Shown: positions 14,095 to 49,973 of the stretch, piece by piece
Layout of the letters: every line of letters begins with the position of its first letter
How positions within the stretch are numbered: position 1 is the first letter of the stretch
Virus record (IMG/VR): IMGVR_UViG_3300032770_000001
Coordinates: 248,001-312,000 of that record
DNA: 64,000 nt
Reading direction: 5' to 3' (one strand)
Program-made: the position numbers and the translations under genes
Notes under the pieces: generated by a model
What the model was told of the DNA's origin: nothing
The model's input: only the letters and a program-made list of their open reading frames with translations
The model's database searches: none

Positions 14095-15537
14095 GAGTCG
14101 TACAGCTTGGCGGTCTCACAGTCGTCGGCATGAGCGAAGAGCAAGAAGTTTTCATGCGCAAGCGTGAAGCTTTCGTCGAACGCTGGATGAAGGAACACGG
14201 TCTGACAAAAGAGACCGCGACCATCAAACAGATTCTTGAAATGCGCCAAGAAGAAGGGTGGAAGAATCCCCAATGAAAACCCTGAGCGTCAACCGCTTCA
14301 TCTGTCAACGTACCGGGCGTATCTTCGATACCGAAGCGGCCTGCCGCGTGTCTGAAAACAAATTCCCCGCCAAGAAAATCAAACAGTTGTTCGACCGCAT
14401 CATGCGAGGCAAGTATTGGGTGCCGAAAGTCGGCGATCTTGTCTATGTGCCGACGATGATGTCCATCGATCATGGCGAGGATGACGTGCAGGGTGGACGT
14501 GCAATGGTCACCCGCGTTTACAAAAACATGAGCGGCGGCGACAAGGACTGCATCTTTATCGAAATCGCGCAGCATGATCGCGGCGGCAATTGGACGCAGT
14601 TCCTTTTCCCGGAACAGAAGCAACTGATGCATCGCTTCAAGGACATGGTCGCCCGTCCCGATCCTGATTACGGTCCGAGCGATCCCAACGGAGGATGGAG
14701 CTAATGGAAACTCGTGAACAACATTTGAACTGGTGCAAAGAACGTGCGCTGGCGATTCTGAACACTGGTGATATCGCCGGAGCCTATGCTTCAATGGCAT
14801 CCGATCTCCGCAAACACCCGGAAACCGAGGATCACATCGCTATCGGTCTAGGGATGTCGCTTTTGTTCGGTGGACACCTGAACACAACCAACGAGATGCG
14901 CAAATTCATCGAAGGCTTCAACTGAGCCTGCACTGGCAGAAAGACCTGCCGCACAAGTTCGTCTGGCGATGGGCGACTTGGATGCGCCGGGAATACAAAC
15001 GACAGCAGAGAATGCGAAATGAGTCGAGGCAGCAAGGTTCATCCGAAGGGCGAATTCGATATCCGCTATCCGGCTGTCGAGAAATTTGAGCAGTTCTGCG
15101 CTAACCTGCGGTCGCACATGAGGGCGCACGATAAGGGCGATCTCAAGAATGCACAGATCATTTATCGCCGAGCCGTGGGATACGCTTACGAGCGAACCAA
15201 GTCGGCGGTAGAGGCAATGAACCCGAACGATTTTACAGACGTGATGACTCCGGCGTGGAGGCAGTTCCGATTTAATCACGGCGAGTTATCCCGGCTGATT
15301 AGCAAGTACAGATTCATCAAGCAAGAGGACATCAAGATATGAGCCATCTCGCCGATCCCGAAACACAGCCACTCTGGAACAAGGTCATCGACATGTGCGG
15401 CGGTGACTATGACCAAGCCGTGACGTTCATTTGCCGCCTGCGGGAGTTGGTATGTGTTGTCGATCCGTCACGTGGCGAAGATGTCACCAATGCGATTCGC
15501 CGTGCGCAGTACGAAGAGGCTCTTGAGGAGGCTCTGT

Positions 15538-17652
15538 TTGACTAACTCAATCGACAACCCGGCAGTCATTGCGCGTATTCGGCAGCTTAATACCGAACTG
15601 GAACTGGCACGCGAGGCTTATTACAAGTCGGCTACGCCGATCATGTCGGACGCTGAATACGACAAGAAGGAAAAGAACCTTCGCGATATCGTGAAATCAA
15701 GCCCGTGGCTGGCCGAATTTGCTCCGGTATTGACTACGGTCGGTAACGATCTGATGCCTGCCGCAGGGCGTATTCGTCATAGCCGCCCCATGCTCTCCAT
15801 CGAGAACAAATACGAGAAGTCCGAGATCGATGATTTCCAGAAGAACGTATTGCATGGCGAAGCAATGCTTCTGGAGCCGAAACGTGACGGCATTTCCTGC
15901 GAACTTCGCTACCGCGAGGGCAAGCTGCAACTGGCATTGACACGTGGTTCCGGCTCCGAGGGCGAGGATATCACGGCTCAGATTCGTGTGCTGAGAGACA
16001 TCCCGAAAGAGATCAAGTATAGTGACGCATTCCCGCATAGCCTTGATGTGCGCGGTGAACTGGTCATGCGCAAGTCCGAACTGGAGCGCCTGAACAAGAT
16101 CGCCCGTGAGAAGGGCGGCAAGGAATATCAGTCCACTCGCAATTTGGTTGCTGGCACCGTCAAGTTGAAGGACATGAACGAAGTTGCCAAGCGTGAGATT
16201 CTGTTTATCCCGTGGGAGATGACCGGGGATGGGCAACTGTCGGATAGTGGCTATGTCCGTATGACCATGTTGGCAAGTGCAGGCTTCGCCAAGTACGAGG
16301 GCTATCTGGTCGATCCAGCCGACAGCACCGACGTTATTAAGGTGCTCGATCACATCCTGAAAGAGAACGAGCAATCACAGATCGTGGCTGATGGCGTAGT
16401 CGCCAAAGCTGACAGCATGAAGCTGCGCAAGGAACTCGGCGGCGGCACCAAGTTCGCTAACTATCAAGTTTGTTACAAACCGCAGACCGACTTCGCTACG
16501 ACCTACTTGCGCAAGATCGTGTGGCAGACCGGGCGCTCCGGCAAACTGACCCCGGTCGGCGAGTGCGACCCGGTTCCTTTGGCGGGGGCGGTGGTGACCC
16601 GTGCAACCCTCAATAATCTCAGTTTTATTGAGGAAATGGGACTCAAATTGAACGCCAAAGTGAAGATGCTTCGCTCTGGCGGCGTAATCCCGGAGATCGA
16701 CGGAGTCATCGAAGAGGGCGACACCGCAATTAAAGCACCCGGACATTGTCCGGAGTGCGGCAGCATTATCGTTGCCGAGACAGATGAGCGCAGCGGCATC
16801 CTGACGCACTGGTGTCAGAACGTCGAGTGCCCCGGTCGCGTCTCCGATCTGTTCTATTTCATCGGCGGACGAGGCGTGCTGGAGATTGACGGACTCGGCC
16901 CGGAAATGGCTTTGAAGATCGTCAAGGATGGCTACGCCCGAAATATCGGCGAACTTTTCGAATTCCAGACTGAGGCAATGGAAGGCATCAAGACACACGG
17001 CGAAGAGAACTTCGACCGCCGTATGGCGAAACGCGGCTTCTCTGTCGTGTTCCGTAAGATGGTGCAGTCGATGGAACTCGCCAAAAAGAAAGATTGGGAT
17101 CGCTGGATTATGGCTCTCGGTATCCCCATGATCGGTGGGTCGCTTTCCAAGGTTCTGGCGACGAAGTTGGAATTGATGCCGGAGTCGATGAAGTACCTGA
17201 CCGCCCGATTGCTCGATGTTGAGGGCATGGAGATCGAAGGCATCGGTTTCCACAAAAAGCAGATGATTCTGGATTGGGCGAAGGATAGTCAGAATCGCAA
17301 GATTTGCGAGGCTCTGTATAACGCCGGGGTTGCTCCCAAGGCTCCTGAGAAAGTACAGGTGGTTGCCGGGGAGCCGCTTAAGAACGTGGTGTTCGTCATC
17401 ACTGGCGAGTTCAGTGAGGATCGTGAGAAAATCACGGCAAAACTGGTAAAACTTGGTGCTACATCAAAGTCTGGTGTATCATCGAAGGTGAACCTGTTGA
17501 TCGTCGGGGAAGCCCCCGGCAAGACCAAGACAACCAAGGCGAAAGAACTTGGGATTCAACAGGTCGGCAAGGACTGGCTGGTCAACGTGCTTCGCGAGAA
17601 CGGCATGGAATTGTCCGGCTCCGGGCTCGATTTTGAAATGGACGAGGCGTAA
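15538..17652 (+). CDS. ligA: NAD-dependent DNA ligase
   Basis: MSDAEYD, RPMLSI, EPKRDG (KxDG), TRG, VRGE, GRSGKLTPV, zinc finger, C-terminal BRCT; TTG start after GAGGAG. Confidence 0.95.
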   Translation: MTNSIDNPAVIARIRQLNTELELAREAYYKSATPIMSDAEYDKKEKNLRDIVKSSPWLAEFAPVLTTVGNDLMPAAGRIRHSRPMLSIENKYEKSEIDDFQKNVLHGEAMLLEPKRDGISCELRYREGKLQLALTRGSGSEGEDITAQIRVLRDIPKEIKYSDAFPHSLDVRGELVMRKSELERLNKIAREKGGKEYQSTRNLVAGTVKLKDMNEVAKREILFIPWEMTGDGQLSDSGYVRMTMLASAGFAKYEGYLVDPADSTDVIKVLDHILKENEQSQIVADGVVAKADSMKLRKELGGGTKFANYQVCYKPQTDFATTYLRKIVWQTGRSGKLTPVGECDPVPLAGAVVTRATLNNLSFIEEMGLKLNAKVKMLRSGGVIPEIDGVIEEGDTAIKAPGHCPECGSIIVAETDERSGILTHWCQNVECPGRVSDLFYFIGGRGVLEIDGLGPEMALKIVKDGYARNIGELFEFQTEAMEGIKTHGEENFDRRMAKRGFSVVFRKMVQSMELAKKKDWDRWIMALGIPMIGGSLSKVLATKLELMPESMKYLTARLLDVEGMEIEGIGFHKKQMILDWAKDSQNRKICEALYNAGVAPKAPEKVQVVAGEPLKNVVFVITGEFSEDREKITAKLVKLGATSKSGVSSKVNLLIVGEAPGKTKTTKAKELGIQQVGKDWLVNVLRENGMELSGSGLDFEMDEA

Positions 17653-25650: not shown

Positions 25651-26748
25651 TTGCAACGACGTAATTTTCTTCGCGGTCTACTTCTCGCTCCGCTTGCCGG
25701 ACTCTTCCCCACGTTCACGTGGGCTGAGGTCTGGAGCAAGTTCACTAACTGGGTTCCGGTACGATCACTTTCCAAAACTGAGCAACAATCTGAAATGCTC
25801 GGTAAGCTACTCAAGACCGCTGGAGGTCGGCAATTGCTTGCCGCATCTATCGGACCATCGATCCGCCGTCGTCGCGATTACACCAGTCTTATCCGCAAAG
25901 CGTTTCACACCCAAAATGATCCTGTCATTCGCAATGTGACAGAACAGGATTTGTACGTTGTTGGTGAAGAGGGCGGCGATATTATCCGGGTGAGCAACCC
26001 CAAGATAATCAATTTCCCGACGTTCCGCATCGTAAGCAACCCGATGATCCCGTACAGCGATGTCACCGGCAAGCGGTTCGACCTCGTCGCTCGTTGCCTC
26101 AACCTGTCCAAAGCAGAGATAGGTGCTTGCGAAGAGGGGTACATGTTCGCCTTAATGAACGCTGCCGCCGAGGGAGCAAACGCCGGGGGTGCGGGGAATC
26201 CCGATCTCCAGTATGAAGAGAGTCTCGAATTCCTCGAACCGATGAAAGCGCAATTCGCCAAACAGGGCGTCAAAGAGATCAACTTTGCGTTTGTCCATCC
26301 TCGCGATTTCGTCACCTTACTCAAGAACCAGACGTTTATGAATCACTTTGACCGGGAGACCAAACGTAGTTTCCTCAAAGCTGGCGTGATGGGTTACTAC
26401 CAGTTGGCAGATAAAGGCGCAGTCACTTTCATTCAGAACCGTAAGGTCACATACGGATACATCTACATCACAGGCAACACTCCGGCGACCGAAACAGAAC
26501 CAGCCGTTCACACTGGTTATGTCGTCGATCACGTTCCTCTGACCGTGCAATCGACAGATCGTCTTGATCTTGAACAGATCGGTTTCACGATCAGCGAAAA
26601 GGTCGGTTTCGCTTTGAATCCCATCGCCGTTCAACGTGTGAAGATTGCAACAGACAAACCTGTTGTTGAGCCCGTGGATGAAGGTGATGATTTAGACAAG
26701 ATTATCGACAAAACGGGCATCTACCCGTGGGCTGAAGTCAAAGCTTAA
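25651..26748 (+). CDS. major-capsid-protein-like paralogue with twin-arginine signal
   Basis: AGGAGG RBS; MQRRNFLRGLLLAPLAG...TWA; body (GRQLLAASI..RRRRDYTSLIRKAF, YVVGEEG, FRIVSNP, RFDLVAR) resembles large-phage HK97-fold capsid proteins, from recall. Confidence 0.65.
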   Translation: MQRRNFLRGLLLAPLAGLFPTFTWAEVWSKFTNWVPVRSLSKTEQQSEMLGKLLKTAGGRQLLAASIGPSIRRRRDYTSLIRKAFHTQNDPVIRNVTEQDLYVVGEEGGDIIRVSNPKIINFPTFRIVSNPMIPYSDVTGKRFDLVARCLNLSKAEIGACEEGYMFALMNAAAEGANAGGAGNPDLQYEESLEFLEPMKAQFAKQGVKEINFAFVHPRDFVTLLKNQTFMNHFDRETKRSFLKAGVMGYYQLADKGAVTFIQNRKVTYGYIYITGNTPATETEPAVHTGYVVDHVPLTVQSTDRLDLEQIGFTISEKVGFALNPIAVQRVKIATDKPVVEPVDEGDDLDKIIDKTGIYPWAEVKA

Positions 26749-29925: not shown

Positions 29926-30870
29926 ATGGGAACAAGGGCGAAAATCGCGGCAACCGCGAAGCTGGCGAAAAAGGGCAATACTCTGGTCTATGAGAACCGG
30001 AAGCAAGACCCGATTCGTTGGGATATTTCTACGCCGGAACTTCGGGCGAAAGGTTTTCTCGAACTGTTCGAGTTCCTCAAGCGAACATGGAAGGTTTATA
30101 CCTGCGGCTTCTGGGGAACGTCCGACCGCGAGAAGATCGTGCAGAAAGATTTGTATCAGCAGGCGTGCGCAGGAGACGCCAAAGCAGCCGAGAAGTTGCT
30201 GACCATGCGCATCGACTATGAGTACGAAAACTGGTACATCCTCGACGCTCCGGCTGCCGCCAAGGGTGAACCCAAGAAGGTGCTGGCACGCCGTTCAAAC
30301 CCGGTCTACGTAAAAGACATTCGCCGTCAGGATTCCTCCGGACGCTACTCGTTCGAGTTGAGCAATGGGGAAGAGATCGAGATGATGTATGTCCCGGTCA
30401 ACACGACCCGTCAGAATTGGGAGAACGGTTGGCTGATCCATCACTTCCTGATCGACAGTTTCTACGAGAAGCTTGGTCGTGACAAGGACAACGAGAAACT
30501 GGTTGAGGAACTCCTGTCGCACATGAACTACATGCGCATGACCCTCTACTACACTCTGCATCCGGAGCAGATGCCTCTCGGCAAGTCGCTTCCGATCTGG
30601 CAGAACCGTTCCATCTCGGCGGCTGAGGGACTGATCGAGCGTCATGGCGGCAACCCGGTCGAGAAGTTGAAGGACAAAAAGGTTCGCCCGACCGATCTCC
30701 AGAAGGCGCAGAACGCCGTCAGCGGCTTAATTCTCCAATTGGAGAGCCTGATTGGTTGCGTAAAGCGCATCAAGCAGGGCAAGTATGATCTGGACACCTT
30801 CCACGATCACGATCTGAGCCGTTACGAGGAGAAGATCGAGGAAATCAAGAAGGGCATGATCGAGGACTAA
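29926..30870 (+). CDS. hypothetical protein
   Basis: 314-aa ORF with GGGGGA upstream. Confidence 0.72.
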   Translation: MGTRAKIAATAKLAKKGNTLVYENRKQDPIRWDISTPELRAKGFLELFEFLKRTWKVYTCGFWGTSDREKIVQKDLYQQACAGDAKAAEKLLTMRIDYEYENWYILDAPAAAKGEPKKVLARRSNPVYVKDIRRQDSSGRYSFELSNGEEIEMMYVPVNTTRQNWENGWLIHHFLIDSFYEKLGRDKDNEKLVEELLSHMNYMRMTLYYTLHPEQMPLGKSLPIWQNRSISAAEGLIERHGGNPVEKLKDKKVRPTDLQKAQNAVSGLILQLESLIGCVKRIKQGKYDLDTFHDHDLSRYEEKIEEIKKGMIED

Positions 30871-31041
30871 TGCCGGACCGGAAGTACGAGCCTCGCGATT
30901 TCGTGATTGTCCGTGTCTCCAAGAAGCGGTGGAGAATTGCAGTCCTCCGGCTATCCGGGGAGAAGCTGCAAGCGGACTACATCACCGGGAAGTTCAAGTC
31001 GCAGGCCCGTGCTGCCGAAGCACTGAAAACGTGGAACAACA

Positions 31042-31650
31042 GTGCGTATGGCATTCAATACGGAGAATACGCGGAGGCATGATATGGGTCTTTTTCCGAG
31101 CAACATGATCGCAGAAGAAGTTAATGGCGGCGTCAAGGTGTTCGCCAACGTCGCACGTCGCATCGCACGCGACAACCCGGAGTATCCCTACAAGTCTGTC
31201 CTCCTGCCTGAGGCTCCGCAGATCGTCGAGGAAGTCAAGAAGATCATCATTGGAGAATTGATTGAGGCTGGCATTCCGCACAAAATGAATGGCGAAGGCG
31301 TATGCGGGATGTTCGACATGTCTTTTGACGACGTAGAAAGTCTCCGTATGTCCAACGGCTACTTCCCGGAAGTTCCGTCGAAGCTGATCGGTTTTTACAA
31401 CAAGTGGAAATTTGAGCGACGTTGGTATTACTATGTAGCAGAGGGTGCCGGAATCCCTCCGGAATTCGCCATCCCGTTCGACAAAGAATGGGGTCGTCAG
31501 GTCAGAGTTCACGGTGACTGCGGTTGCCGTGGGGCGGAATTTTGGGGAGAAGGCTTCGGGATCGACATGTATCACATCGATACTCCCGCAGGTTTGAAAG
31601 CATTCATCGGGCTCCTCGATAAGGTTTACAAACCACATCCGCGAGAGTAA
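31042..31650 (+). CDS. hypothetical protein (start probably later)
   Basis: WKFERRWYYYVAEG...YHIDTPAGL. Confidence 0.65.
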   Translation: MRMAFNTENTRRHDMGLFPSNMIAEEVNGGVKVFANVARRIARDNPEYPYKSVLLPEAPQIVEEVKKIIIGELIEAGIPHKMNGEGVCGMFDMSFDDVESLRMSNGYFPEVPSKLIGFYNKWKFERRWYYYVAEGAGIPPEFAIPFDKEWGRQVRVHGDCGCRGAEFWGEGFGIDMYHIDTPAGLKAFIGLLDKVYKPHPRE

Positions 31651-35826: not shown

Positions 35827-35914
35827 TGGGCGATGGTGTAATTGGCAACACACTTGGCTCTGAACCAAGGGACTGATAAAGCTTGTGGAGGTTCGAGTCC
35901 TCCTCGCCCAGCCA
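35827..35914 (+). tRNA. tRNA-Gln(CTG) with extended variable region
   Basis: TGGGCGA/TCGCCCA-G-CCA; CTTGG-CTCTGAA-CCAAG. Confidence 0.88.
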
Positions 35915-36317: not shown

Positions 36318-36464
36318 GTGATCGCTGGCAGTCCGATTGATTTTGACTGCCCTCTTTGCGGCAAGCCGAAAGGCGTACCCTGCAAAGTCAGGATCGTGGA
36401 AGAGCAGATCGTAGAGATCGACTTCCATCTTGACCGCAAAAAGTTGACAAGATTGTCCGCATAG
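36318..36464 (+). CDS. small zinc-finger protein ending inside tRNA-Arg(ACG)
   Basis: CPLC..PC..H; the TAG stop is tRNA positions 8-10. Confidence 0.5.
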   Translation: MIAGSPIDFDCPLCGKPKGVPCKVRIVEEQIVEIDFHLDRKKLTRLSA

Positions 36465-36531
36465 CTCAACTGGATAGAGCGCGTGCCTACGAAGCATGAG
36501 GTTGGGGGTTCGAGTCCCTCTGTGGACACCA
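36455..36531 (+). tRNA. tRNA-Arg(ACG)
   Basis: CGTGC-CTACGAA-GCATG; canonical D and T arms. Confidence 0.95.
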
Positions 36532-36622: not shown

Positions 36623-36709
36623 GCCTCCGTGTCGGCAACTGGATGCCACCCTCGCTACGAACGAGGAGCCCGAAAGGGAATGCAGGTTCGAGTCCTGTCG
36701 GGGGTTCCA
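36623..36709 (+). tRNA. atypical tRNA-Arg(ACG) with long variable arm
   Basis: CCTCG-CTACGAA-CGAGG; V arm CCC-GAAA-GGG; TCCA end. Confidence 0.82.
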
Positions 36710-36920: not shown

Positions 36921-37007
36921 TGGGATGTAGACCGTAATTGGTAGCGGGCGTGGCTGTTAACCACGTGCAGAAATGCCTTGTAGGTTCGAGCCCTACCGTC
37001 CCAGCCA
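36921..37007 (+). tRNA. tRNA-Asn(GTT) with long variable arm
   Basis: CGTGG-CTGTTAA-CCACG; V arm GCA-GAAA-TGC. Confidence 0.88.
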
Positions 37008-37013
37008 GATTTT

Positions 37014-37089
37014 TCCGGGGTAGCTCAGCGGTAGTAGCGTCCGGCTGTTAACCGGATGGTCGCAGGTTCGATCCCTGCCCCCGGAGCCA
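37014..37089 (+). tRNA. tRNA-Asn(GTT)
   Basis: TCCGG-CTGTTAA-CCGGA; canonical. Confidence 0.95.
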
Positions 37090-37941: not shown

Positions 37942-38012
37942 CGTACCGTAGCTTAGTTGGCAGAGCGTCCGCCTTGGAAGCGGAAGACGCAGGTTCGAAT
38001 CCTGTCGGCTTT
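37942..38012 (+). pseudogene. tRNA-Pro(TGG) pseudogene
   Basis: intact D, anticodon (TCCGC-CTTGGAA-GCGGA) and T arms, but the acceptor stem pairs only 3 bp and there is no CCA. Confidence 0.7.
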
Positions 38013-42025: not shown

Positions 42026-42099
42026 AGCCCTGTCGTTCAACGGTAGGACATCTGCCTCTGGAGCAGAGTATCGGGGTTCGAATCCCTGTGGGGCTGCCA
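42026..42099 (+). tRNA. tRNA-Gln(CTG)
   Basis: TCTGC-CTCTGGA-GCAGA; GCCA end. Confidence 0.9.
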
Positions 42100-42221: not shown

Positions 42222-42344
42222 TTAAAGAGACCATGAACACTGCAATCAATCTCGTCGCAATGGCCTGCTTCGTAGCGGGTATGGTCGTATTCTATCTTGC
42301 ACTGACCTCCCTTCCCCTCAGACGAAAACGTTAACCACAAACGT

Positions 42345-42428
42345 GGGGGCGTAGTCGGGGGGCTCTTCTAAAGCCTTAGCCGTAAACCGGAACTGCGAAT
42401 GCGAGTTCGAATCTCGCCGCCCCTTCCA
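42345..42428 (+). tRNA. D-armless tRNA-Arg(TCT)-like RNA
   Basis: GGGGGCG/CGCCCCT-T-CCA; GGGCT-CTTCTAA-AGCCT; canonical T arm; only 7-8 nt in place of the D arm. Confidence 0.7.
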
Positions 42429-48929: not shown

Positions 48930-49973
48930 ATGGAACGTAGATCAAAAGTTTTCGGAGCGGTCTTCGGGCAAGCAATTGGCGATGCTCTCGGACATCCTCG
49001 CGAATTCGCTAACTCCCGTATGGTCAAAGGGGTATGGTCGCCCGTAGTTATCGAAGACCTTCCAGAAAAGAACAAATTCACCGACGATACGCAGATGTTC
49101 TGCTGCATCGGTGAGGCTCTCATATCCGACCCCCCACACGTTGATGAGAACAAGTTCATGGAGGCGGTCAGCCGGAATTTCGTGGTGTGGAAAGACAAGC
49201 CATTAGGCGGTGACCACCGGGCACCGGGCGGCTCCTGTATGGCGGGAGTTCGGAAATTGAGTGCCGGAGTGCCGTGGCTTGAATCCGGAGGGCTACAAGC
49301 GAAGGGAAACGGCACTGCCATGCGTTCTGGCGTGGTGGGTGCCTATTACTGGAGCACCCCGGACTATGCGTTCAGGATCGGGGCACTGACTGCCGTCAAC
49401 ACGCATTACAACTTGGAACCCATCATCGGAGCCGGGATAGTCAGCTACCTAGTTGCGGCGTCGATTAAGGGAATCGAATTTTCGACTGCGGTCGGCTGCG
49501 CCTTCAAGCTGGCAAGCGAATTCGATGACTTGACGGTCGTGGCTCATTATCCCCAGCAAGTGCGCCTCGGACCGGGGGAGGCGAATCAAAATCCATGGTA
49601 CGCCATTGGGCATATCGCAGCCAGTTTTGCCTTCGGAAATGGGAAATCGGTCAATATCAAAGCCTTTAATAAGTGGAATGGGGATGACTTCGCGGTCATT
49701 CCAGCGGTTGCCGCAGCCGTGTTTTACAACGCACGGTACAGTACCTACCGAGACATCGTCCTGAACTGCGTGAACAACACCGGGGACTGCGACACCACCA
49801 CTGCCATCGCTGGCACCATTGCCGGAGCCCGATTTGGGACGCCGGGAATAGATCAAGAGTGGATCATGCGGGTGGAACTCAGCGAGTATTTAGCGACACT
49901 GGCGGATCAGATTTATCAGGGCAGTATTACGTTAGTAGGACAGGAGAAAGAAACGCATGGATCGCATTCGTAG
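48930..49973 (+). CDS. ADP-ribosylglycohydrolase (DraG/ARH family)
   Basis: AIGDALG, TDDTQM, GNGTAMR, GDCDTTTAIAG. Confidence 0.93.
   Translation: MERRSKVFGAVFGQAIGDALGHPREFANSRMVKGVWSPVVIEDLPEKNKFTDDTQMFCCIGEALISDPPHVDENKFMEAVSRNFVVWKDKPLGGDHRAPGGSCMAGVRKLSAGVPWLESGGLQAKGNGTAMRSGVVGAYYWSTPDYAFRIGALTAVNTHYNLEPIIGAGIVSYLVAASIKGIEFSTAVGCAFKLASEFDDLTVVAHYPQQVRLGPGEANQNPWYAIGHIAASFAFGNGKSVNIKAFNKWNGDDFAVIPAVAAAVFYNARYSTYRDIVLNCVNNTGDCDTTTAIAGTIAGARFGTPGIDQEWIMRVELSEYLATLADQIYQGSITLVGQEKETHGSHS

Follow-up and report, generated by a model that had tools for sequence, protein, structure and literature searches.

A putative arginine tRNA class of phages with a re-threaded D arm and a conserved, non-cloverleaf core

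An RNA that resembles a tRNA in every part but its D arm raises the question of how such a molecule would fold, and whether it could still serve as a tRNA. The window analyzed here, a stretch of 64,000 nucleotides, corresponds to bases 248001–312000 of a 455,708-bp IMG/VR virus record (100% complete by CheckV, G+C 53.7%), and at positions 42345–42428 its plus strand carries a tRNA-Arg(UCU)-type gene with a 7-bp acceptor stem, an anticodon arm, a T arm and a CCA end (all features below lie on the same strand unless stated). A sequence-only reading had described the element as lacking its D arm and possessing a variable region of some 23 nt that compensates by pairing with the strand left at the D-arm site; it had further suggested that the accompanying loss of A20 might make the RNA a decoy.

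The anatomy of the element agrees with much of this description. The 5′ acceptor strand GGGGGCG (42345–42351) pairs at 7/7 positions with 42418–42424 (one G-U), and the 3′ end of the element (42418–42428) is completed by discriminator T (42425) and an encoded CCA (42426–42428). The anticodon arm (42360–42376, reading GGGCT / CTTCTAA / AGCCT) has a 5-bp stem (42360–64 with 42372–76) and a 7-nt loop with U33 and a purine at 37; its anticodon TCT (42367–69) is that of an arginine tRNA reading AGA and contains C35, an identity element of bacterial tRNA-Arg. The T arm (GCGAG / TTCGAAT / CTCGC, 42401–42417) presents a T-Psi-C-type loop. The D arm of the RF00005 model (a stem of positions 10–13 with 22–25, placed 5′ of the anticodon arm) is absent, its site holding only 8 nt, TAGTCGGG (42352–59), too short for any hairpin. 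The distance from anticodon arm to T arm measures 24 nt (42377–42400), close to the value first given.

Standard tRNA finders miss this type of RNA: neither ARAGORN nor Rfam at default filters reported anything at 42345–42428. The lowered-threshold, mitochondrial and intron outputs of ARAGORN were spurious or poor (a tRNA-Stop(tta), a reverse-strand Arg(ccg), a 49-nt “D-loop mtRNA” and an intron-bearing Leu). With permissive filters only, Rfam RF00005 aligns to the element end to end at 32.5 bits (E = 2e-5, gathering score 29), reducing 15 D-arm model positions to 5 nt and inserting 21 nt in the variable region. Folding of the single sequence yielded a minimum free energy of −28.9 kcal/mol (z = −0.2, i.e., no better than shuffled), and the energies of the structure proposed below (−24.2), of that drawn in the sequence-only reading (−25.1) and of the three arms alone (−23.8) permit no choice between them. 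RNAalifold, run on 128 homologous sequences, returned the three classical arms, with no hairpin between the anticodon and T arms and neither of two helices, H2 and H3, that we describe below; with the energies indecisive as well, the case for H2 and H3 is therefore a comparative one. The unremarkable z score and low Rfam score would both be in keeping with a decaying pseudogene, that is, a once canonical tRNA-Arg in which the D arm is newly lost and the variable region has taken up junk, a reading on which the homologues bear directly.

A neighboring 509-aa protein led to three other phage contigs, two of which carry a syntenic homologue of the element (protein identity 62% and 41%). Both homologues sit between tRNA-Gln(CUG) and tRNA-Lys(UUU), one of them in a 463-kb genome, and both lack a D arm, carry UCU as their anticodon and show stem changes that are compensatory. 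A first search motif, built from three sequences with the anticodon left unconstrained, matched at least 118 viral contigs and, among the cellular genomes (185,579 bacterial and archaeal species, one genome each), 9 contigs, mostly metagenome bins. A second motif left the “CUG” segment unconstrained, and the two motifs together gave 128 distinct sequences, all with Arg anticodons (UCU 99, ACG 19, UCG 8, CCU 3, as tallied before a few misparsed rows were dropped). Overall, more than 130 distinct homologues were gathered from very different phages, the G+C content of the element ranging from 36 to 66%; CCA is encoded in 46/87 of the members first parsed. Adjacent members with differing Arg anticodons occur at some loci, and the 478-kb phage G004 has two members (UCU and UCG).

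Bases fixed by the search patterns (UAA, GGA, the UG of CUG, AAU and the T loop in most sequences) owe part of their conservation to the search itself; some 38 members found with a covariance model of the class, R1, are free of this bias, their recovery not being forced by the motifs. The window element scores 81.5 bits with R1 against at most 33.3 bits for the other 42 matches in its genome, which places it far beyond chance relative to the other tRNAs there, the score being partly a product of construction because the window sequence is in the R1 training set. Two further training-set members, from Caulobacter phage Ccr10 and Vibrio phage D419, score 79 and 85.7 bits; outside the training set, the copy in Microbacterium phage Pumpernickel scores 67.6 and the second copy in G004 61.7. 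Across the class, members fall at 62–97 bits (62–86 in other complete phages) and canonical tRNAs at no more than 37, such that by R1 score the class is discrete and clearly apart from canonical tRNAs. R1 also recovers the same architecture with Ile anticodons (GAU and UAU; n = 13) and with a Lys anticodon (CUU; n = 1), the diverged Arg, Ile and Lys forms scoring 41–63 bits. Three 91-nt Arg-ACG members (e.g., L081:1952–2042) carry an extra, true variable hairpin.

To examine the stems, pairs were counted in a MAFFT alignment of the 128 sequences (A2) on a structure specified beforehand. Standard pairs occupy 95.4% of cells, compared with 61.5% in shuffled alignments and 40–46% when partners were slid; the corresponding covariation scores are 0.911 observed, 0.228 shuffled (0/500 shuffles reach the observed value) and 0.11–0.16 slid, of which the slid-partner control is the fairer, as the sequences share ancestry and the shuffle statistics thus overstate their independence. 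The acceptor stem is paired in 99.2% of cells over the class, with 7/7 pairs varying on both sides, the anticodon stem in 94.7%, with double changes at all 5 pairs, and the T arm in 98.8%. The TA at 42352–42353, equivalent to U8 and A9, is invariant in 128/128 members; U8 would make its usual U8-A14 contact with the second A of the UAA motif described below, itself invariant.

The remainder of the D-arm site pairs, on this comparative evidence, with two segments beyond the anticodon arm. Helix H2 would join nt 10–11 (GT, 42354–42355) to AC at 42392–42393, the two bases just 3′ of a conserved GGA, and helix H3 would join nt 12–14 (CGG, 42356–42358) to CCG at 42380–42382, the three bases that directly precede a conserved UAA (A2 columns 10 and 12 with 53 and 52 for H2, and 13–15 with 42–40 for H3). 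At position 10 (10:53) all four Watson–Crick combinations are seen (G:C 90, A:U 29, C:G 3, U:A 1, with G:U 1 and other 4), and position 11 (11:52) is C:G in 87, U:A in 14, A:U in 8 and U:G in 4; 8 members have a D-replacement strand shorter by one base, and these have lost nt 11 together with its partner. The first pair of H3 (column 13:42) is C:G in 119 members, and the middle pair (column 14:41) is kept in 125/128 with 6 pair types and 29 double changes. The third (column 15:40) is kept in 75/128 with 5 pair types and is unpaired in 53/128, often as A-C or A-A in the commonest subclass (UAGCCGAG). The pairs unconstrained by the search motifs are those of positions 10, 11, 13 and 14 with their partners, together with R15/Y48 in the model-found set. 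All five H2/H3 pairs can form in the window (G:C, U:A, C:G, G:C, G:C). As judged from the alignment, all stems covary across the 128 sequences, the two new helices included, each of them short.

One subclass has a reduced H2 (the copy in Pumpernickel, L129:1492–1569, and the second G004 copy, L194:1501–1576), with TAC or TAT as 5′ strand and GGA-TG on the 3′ side, the two partner bases being missing.

The proposal that the extra 3′ region compensates for the D arm by pairing with the D-replacement strand is thus borne out by covariation, with one change of partners: the TAGT:ACTG portion of the pairing first drawn stands, as it contains H2, whereas CGG finds its partner in CCG at 42380–82 and not at 42387–89. 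The latter register, CGG with the CCG of CCGGAA, was rejected (in column 14:48 most cells are G-U and there is a single double change, and in 15:47 most cells fail to pair).

These observations leave the pseudogene reading hardly credible. More than 130 distinct homologues retain every stem through compensatory changes and share the same idiosyncratic motifs, the opposite of the recent simple deletion without conserved pairing that the sequence-only reading had named as the finding that would tell against it; both the covariation of the alignment and the R1 score contradict decay. The class also contains what is probably a true decayed copy, and this looks different. The sole match in an isolate bacterium, a class member of Phyllobacterium sp. 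1468 (NZ_JAVDSX010000007.1, L136:121–200, 72.6 bits), has the anticodon loop CTTTTAC and mismatched anticodon and T stems; it could be a copy undergoing decay in the remains of a prophage.

Taken together, H2 and H3 predict that nt 10–14 form one strand of a single helix, the other strand of which is interrupted by a 9-nt bulge. This composite helix would stack on the anticodon stem, the anticodon arm sitting at its tip across a small internal loop composed of G 42359 on the 5′ side and the linker TAG (42377–42379) on the 3′ side; the linker measures 2–4 nt in all members and is mostly UA(N). Because nt 10–14 pair with two segments 3′ of the anticodon arm, the molecule would be a three-way junction and not a cloverleaf, in line with the earlier expectation of some other fold. 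Downstream of H2, the connector TGCGAAT (42394–42400; class consensus UG-NN-AAU) leads to the T stem.

The presence of D-loop-like sequence in the wrong order bears a superficial resemblance to permuted tRNA genes, and so invites the view that the element is a rearranged or intron-like precursor from which processing restores a normal D arm. Permuted and split tRNA genes (Cyanidioschyzon, Nanoarchaeum) are processed into canonical mature tRNA, and share with the phage class an order of elements that departs from the canonical one. They differ in that covariation in the phage class fits the unprocessed order, which explains the covarying H2 and H3; moreover, excising and ligating contiguous pieces in any order never gives the canonical order without trans-joining, ARAGORN in intron mode finds nothing at default and a poor Leu model at lowered threshold, and nothing in the data for the class suggests processing. 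We regard such a precursor as exceedingly improbable.

The 9-nt bulge itself, TAAACCGGA (42383–42391), offers an account of the missing D loop. Its class consensus UAA-N(1-4)-GGA can be read as A14, R15, (16, 17), G18, G19 and A20. In members found with R1, the third base of UAA and the last base before the T stem (the Y48 equivalent, the final T of the connector in the window) are A:U in 29, G:C in 7 and G:G in 2, with no A:C or G:U combination; these bases appear to follow the canonical R15:Y48, or Levitt-type, pattern. We infer that the bulge takes the place of the D loop, with U8-A14, R15:Y48 and G18/G19–T-loop contacts.

The base that follows GG varies with amino acid identity. It is A in 23/24 Arg members outside the search motifs (the 24th, GGGA, being ambiguous) and U in 14/14 Ile and Lys members (GGU), a difference with a nominal Fisher p of ~1e-10, counting GGGA as GGA, for sequences that are not independent; the discriminator is A in all Ile members. 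Arginine identity in E. coli tRNA is read by arginyl-tRNA synthetase (ArgRS) from A20 and C35, A20 being the classical element. The split between GGA (Arg) and GGU (Ile, Lys) speaks for recognition of the bulge as a D loop and for selection of these RNAs for aminoacylation, and an A20 equivalent is probably present in the window at 42391, given the position of this A after GG.

This bears on the suggestion that the RNA is a decoy, which had been derived from the supposed loss of A20 and loses its basis with the probable A20 equivalent after GG in Arg members, within a conserved mimic that also shows Levitt-type covariation. A decoy or sponge, a tRNA-like RNA that titrates a host factor (a tRNA-targeting nuclease, ArgRS or a modification enzyme) and does no decoding, could accommodate the non-canonical core and its rejection by standard tRNA models, and would also fit with documented phage tRNAs that counter tRNA-targeting defenses and with the suggestion that type I-A retrons cut D loops (PMC11555353; PMC12916289). 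We nevertheless consider it unlikely. Anticodons in the class are strictly Arg, or Ile and Lys in sister forms, and identity features agree with them (GG is followed by A in Arg and, together with discriminator A, by U in Ile). The class also retains U33, the 7-nt loop, the acceptor stem and the T loop, in many cases with CCA as well; a decoy would have no need for all these decoding features together.

A further point against a decoy is that the tRNA supplies the one missing Arg isoacceptor in both the window phage and Ccr10. The ARAGORN count for the genome is 61 tRNAs, of which 19 lie within the window, and a tmRNA. The canonical tRNA-Arg genes have the anticodons CCG, ACG (twice) and CCU, and the ARAGORN set of the whole genome contains no other tRNA-Arg(UCU); AGA accounts for 6.9% of Arg codons (461 uses in 413 long ORFs). 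The arrangement in Ccr10 is complementary, its unusual tRNA being Arg-ACG and its only annotated Arg tRNA UCU. In both phages, the odd tRNA fills an isoacceptor gap and does not duplicate a canonical gene.

The same spectrum of anticodons, which fits a decoding need, speaks against a functional tRNA that acts outside ribosomal decoding (as Arg donor for an aminoacyl-transferase, as a primer or as a regulatory RNA). An unusual core might make the tRNA orthogonal and specific to a dedicated partner, and most neighboring genes lack a known function; yet no partner enzyme is conserved alongside, and the elements sit in the ordinary tRNA arrays of unrelated phages. We view a role of this kind as quite improbable.

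Our preferred reading, which we hold to be probable, is that 42345–42428 is a genuine, selected tRNA-Arg(UCU) of a phage class with a re-threaded D arm, charged by the host and decoding AGA. Comparison shows a conserved tRNA-like gene with Arg-specific features and a defined alternative secondary structure, in which the acceptor, anticodon and T arms are canonical, nt 12–14 pair with 42380–82 and nt 10–11 with 42392–93. Such a tRNA would be transcribed with its array and matured, and the UAA-N-GGA bulge would serve as the D loop, bringing U8 to A14, R15 to Y48 and G18/G19 to the T loop. Contacts of this sort would preserve the L shape. A search of the phage genome for the ArgRS core (PF00750) found none, and the host ArgRS would hence be needed for charging, which the A20 equivalent and C35 would allow. 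The charged tRNA would then decode AGA, a codon left unserved by the other tRNAs of this phage.

The candidate class can be placed against known tRNA forms. With canonical tRNA-Arg (RF00005), it shares the 7-bp acceptor stem, the 5-bp anticodon stem, the 7-nt loop with U33 and C35, the T arm with a GTTCGAATC-type loop, the discriminator and CCA, as well as U8, an A14-like A, an R15:Y48-like pair and GG followed by A; it departs from it in having no D hairpin, in that nt 10–14 pair with two segments past the anticodon arm, and in carrying its D-loop-like sequence as a 3′-strand bulge, with no separate variable loop. In type II tRNAs (Leu, Ser, bacterial Tyr) and allo-tRNAs, the anticodon and T arms are likewise over 20 nt apart; these tRNAs retain a D arm and fold the extra region into a self-contained hairpin (PMC5389517), whereas the extra region of the phage class has no hairpin of its own and pairs with nt 10–14.

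The parallel with mitochondrial D-armless tRNAs drawn in the sequence-only reading holds for topology: metazoan examples such as mt-tRNA-Ser(AGY/UCU) also form a three-way junction with a short connector at the D site and are missed by cloverleaf finders. It fails for the elbow. Mitochondrial D-armless tRNAs are organellar, reduced and flexible, lack G18/G19–T-loop contacts and need adapted partner proteins (PMC7609411, PMC9427863), whereas the phage RNAs are ~80 nt long, have a canonical T loop and presumably meet unadapted host enzymes. They have the connector and yet retain a GG-containing mimic and R15:Y48-type covariation, so that D-loop/T-loop contacts appear to be kept.

An engineered counterpart exists in E. 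coli. In a 2024 study (PMC11551756), all known bacterial tRNAs are stated to be canonical cloverleaves, and a tRNA without a D arm is described as working in bacterial translation, an artificial molecule that needed laboratory host evolution; by comparison, the phage class is natural and widespread in phages. Among open-access papers and preprints searched in full text, D-armless tRNAs came up in phage and bacterial literature as mitochondrial cases only, and an earlier report elsewhere is possible. We therefore describe the element as a candidate tRNA with a new, conserved core topology; on present alignments, the class is widespread in phages, previously unannotated and mostly arginine.

With a slight leaning in its favor, we extend this to a more general proposal, namely that a natural, widespread non-cloverleaf fold works in bacterial translation, serving Arg (all anticodons), Ile and Lys in phages whose hosts differ widely, keeping the tertiary core (U8-A14, R15:Y48, G18/G19 to the T loop, A20 identity), invisible to ARAGORN and default Rfam, unannotated in GenBank phage genomes and perhaps favored because its rewired D region evades host tRNA-targeting immunity or other D-arm-dependent enzymes. 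As to why the arm was rewired, our leading guess, in which we place little confidence, is that the tRNA thereby evades nucleases of host or phage, or other enzymes, that recognize a normal D stem-loop; this is a reasonable idea given the documented cases of evasive phage tRNAs and the suggestion that type I-A retrons cut at the D loop (PMC11555353; PMC12916289). Should these RNAs prove to be charged and used, a cloverleaf would not be obligatory with bacterial ribosomes, EF-Tu, RNase P and synthetases, and phage tRNA inventories would be systematically undercounted, an unannotated copy being present in each of the window phage, Ccr10, Pumpernickel and hundreds of Vibrio phage records. The class would further amount to a natural experiment on which core contacts the L shape and ArgRS/IleRS recognition require, a ready scaffold for orthogonal tRNA engineering and a testable link to the phage–host arms race over tRNA cleavage. 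Cultured systems for direct tests are available in Caulobacter crescentus NA1000 with Ccr10, in Vibrio crassostreae phages and in Microbacterium phages.

Cultured copies are found in Caulobacter phages Ccr10, Ccr2 and Ccr29, in Microbacterium phages Pumpernickel and Zooman and in a large series of ~114 kb Vibrio phages; Pseudomonas phage records gave partial BLAST matches only. A BLAST search of the 2-kb neighborhood against cultured phages left the element itself unmatched, and a search with an AT-rich member likewise gave no match. The element lies inside a tRNA cluster in 3/3 records inspected (Ccr10, Vibrio D419, Pumpernickel), and every cultured-phage record listed lacks a tRNA annotation on it, one placing it under “hypothetical protein”. 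In Vibrio phage D419 (OZ195672.1, 65929–66008), the tRNA locus tags run 0007, 0008, 0009, 0011 and 0012; the gap at 0010 coincides exactly with the odd tRNA-Arg(ACG), itself unannotated, as though a predicted gene had been removed. The annotated tRNA-Lys-CTT and tRNA-Lys-TTT of Ccr10 (KY555142.1, 49593–49775) are 87 and 91 nt long, far above normal for Lys, and may be another sign of structurally unusual phage tRNAs.

Several other features of the window phage touch on its tRNA complement. Many of its tRNAs occur in same-anticodon pairs, and in the Gln-CUG, Arg-ACG and Asn-GUU pairs one twin is canonical (42026–42099, 36455–36531 and 37014–37089) and the other is 87–88 nt long (35827–35914, 36623–36709 and 36921–37007), with a D arm and a long anticodon-to-T-arm region that is unusual for these amino acids. 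A tRNA-like sequence at 37946–38008 scores 55.4 bits with Rfam over model positions 5–66 only, ARAGORN remaining silent; the sequence has intact D, anticodon (loop CTTGGAA) and T arms, and its flanks form no acceptor stem. Outside the window, genome positions 25852–26302 and 30867–31271 hold two CUA-anticodon tRNAs, one four-base-anticodon tRNA and the tmRNA. An alternative genetic code was considered and set aside, with TAG ending 62/411 long ORFs, a code 11 coverage of ~85% and no genome-wide recoding evident.

Immediately upstream of the odd tRNA, a small ORF (42233–42334) encodes a 33-aa hydrophobic peptide ending in RRKR (AGA CGA AAA CGT), its stop codon 10 nt before the tRNA and the tRNAs that follow being Arg-UCU and Lys-UUU. 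The RRKR end is kept, in nearly the same DNA, in both diverged relatives (L004 ~461–562; L006 ~595–705); a leader-type or processing signal is conceivable here, as is mere chance. Elsewhere in the window lie genes for an NAD-dependent DNA ligase with adenylation, OB and BRCT domains (15454–17652) and an ADP-ribosylglycohydrolase (48930–49973).
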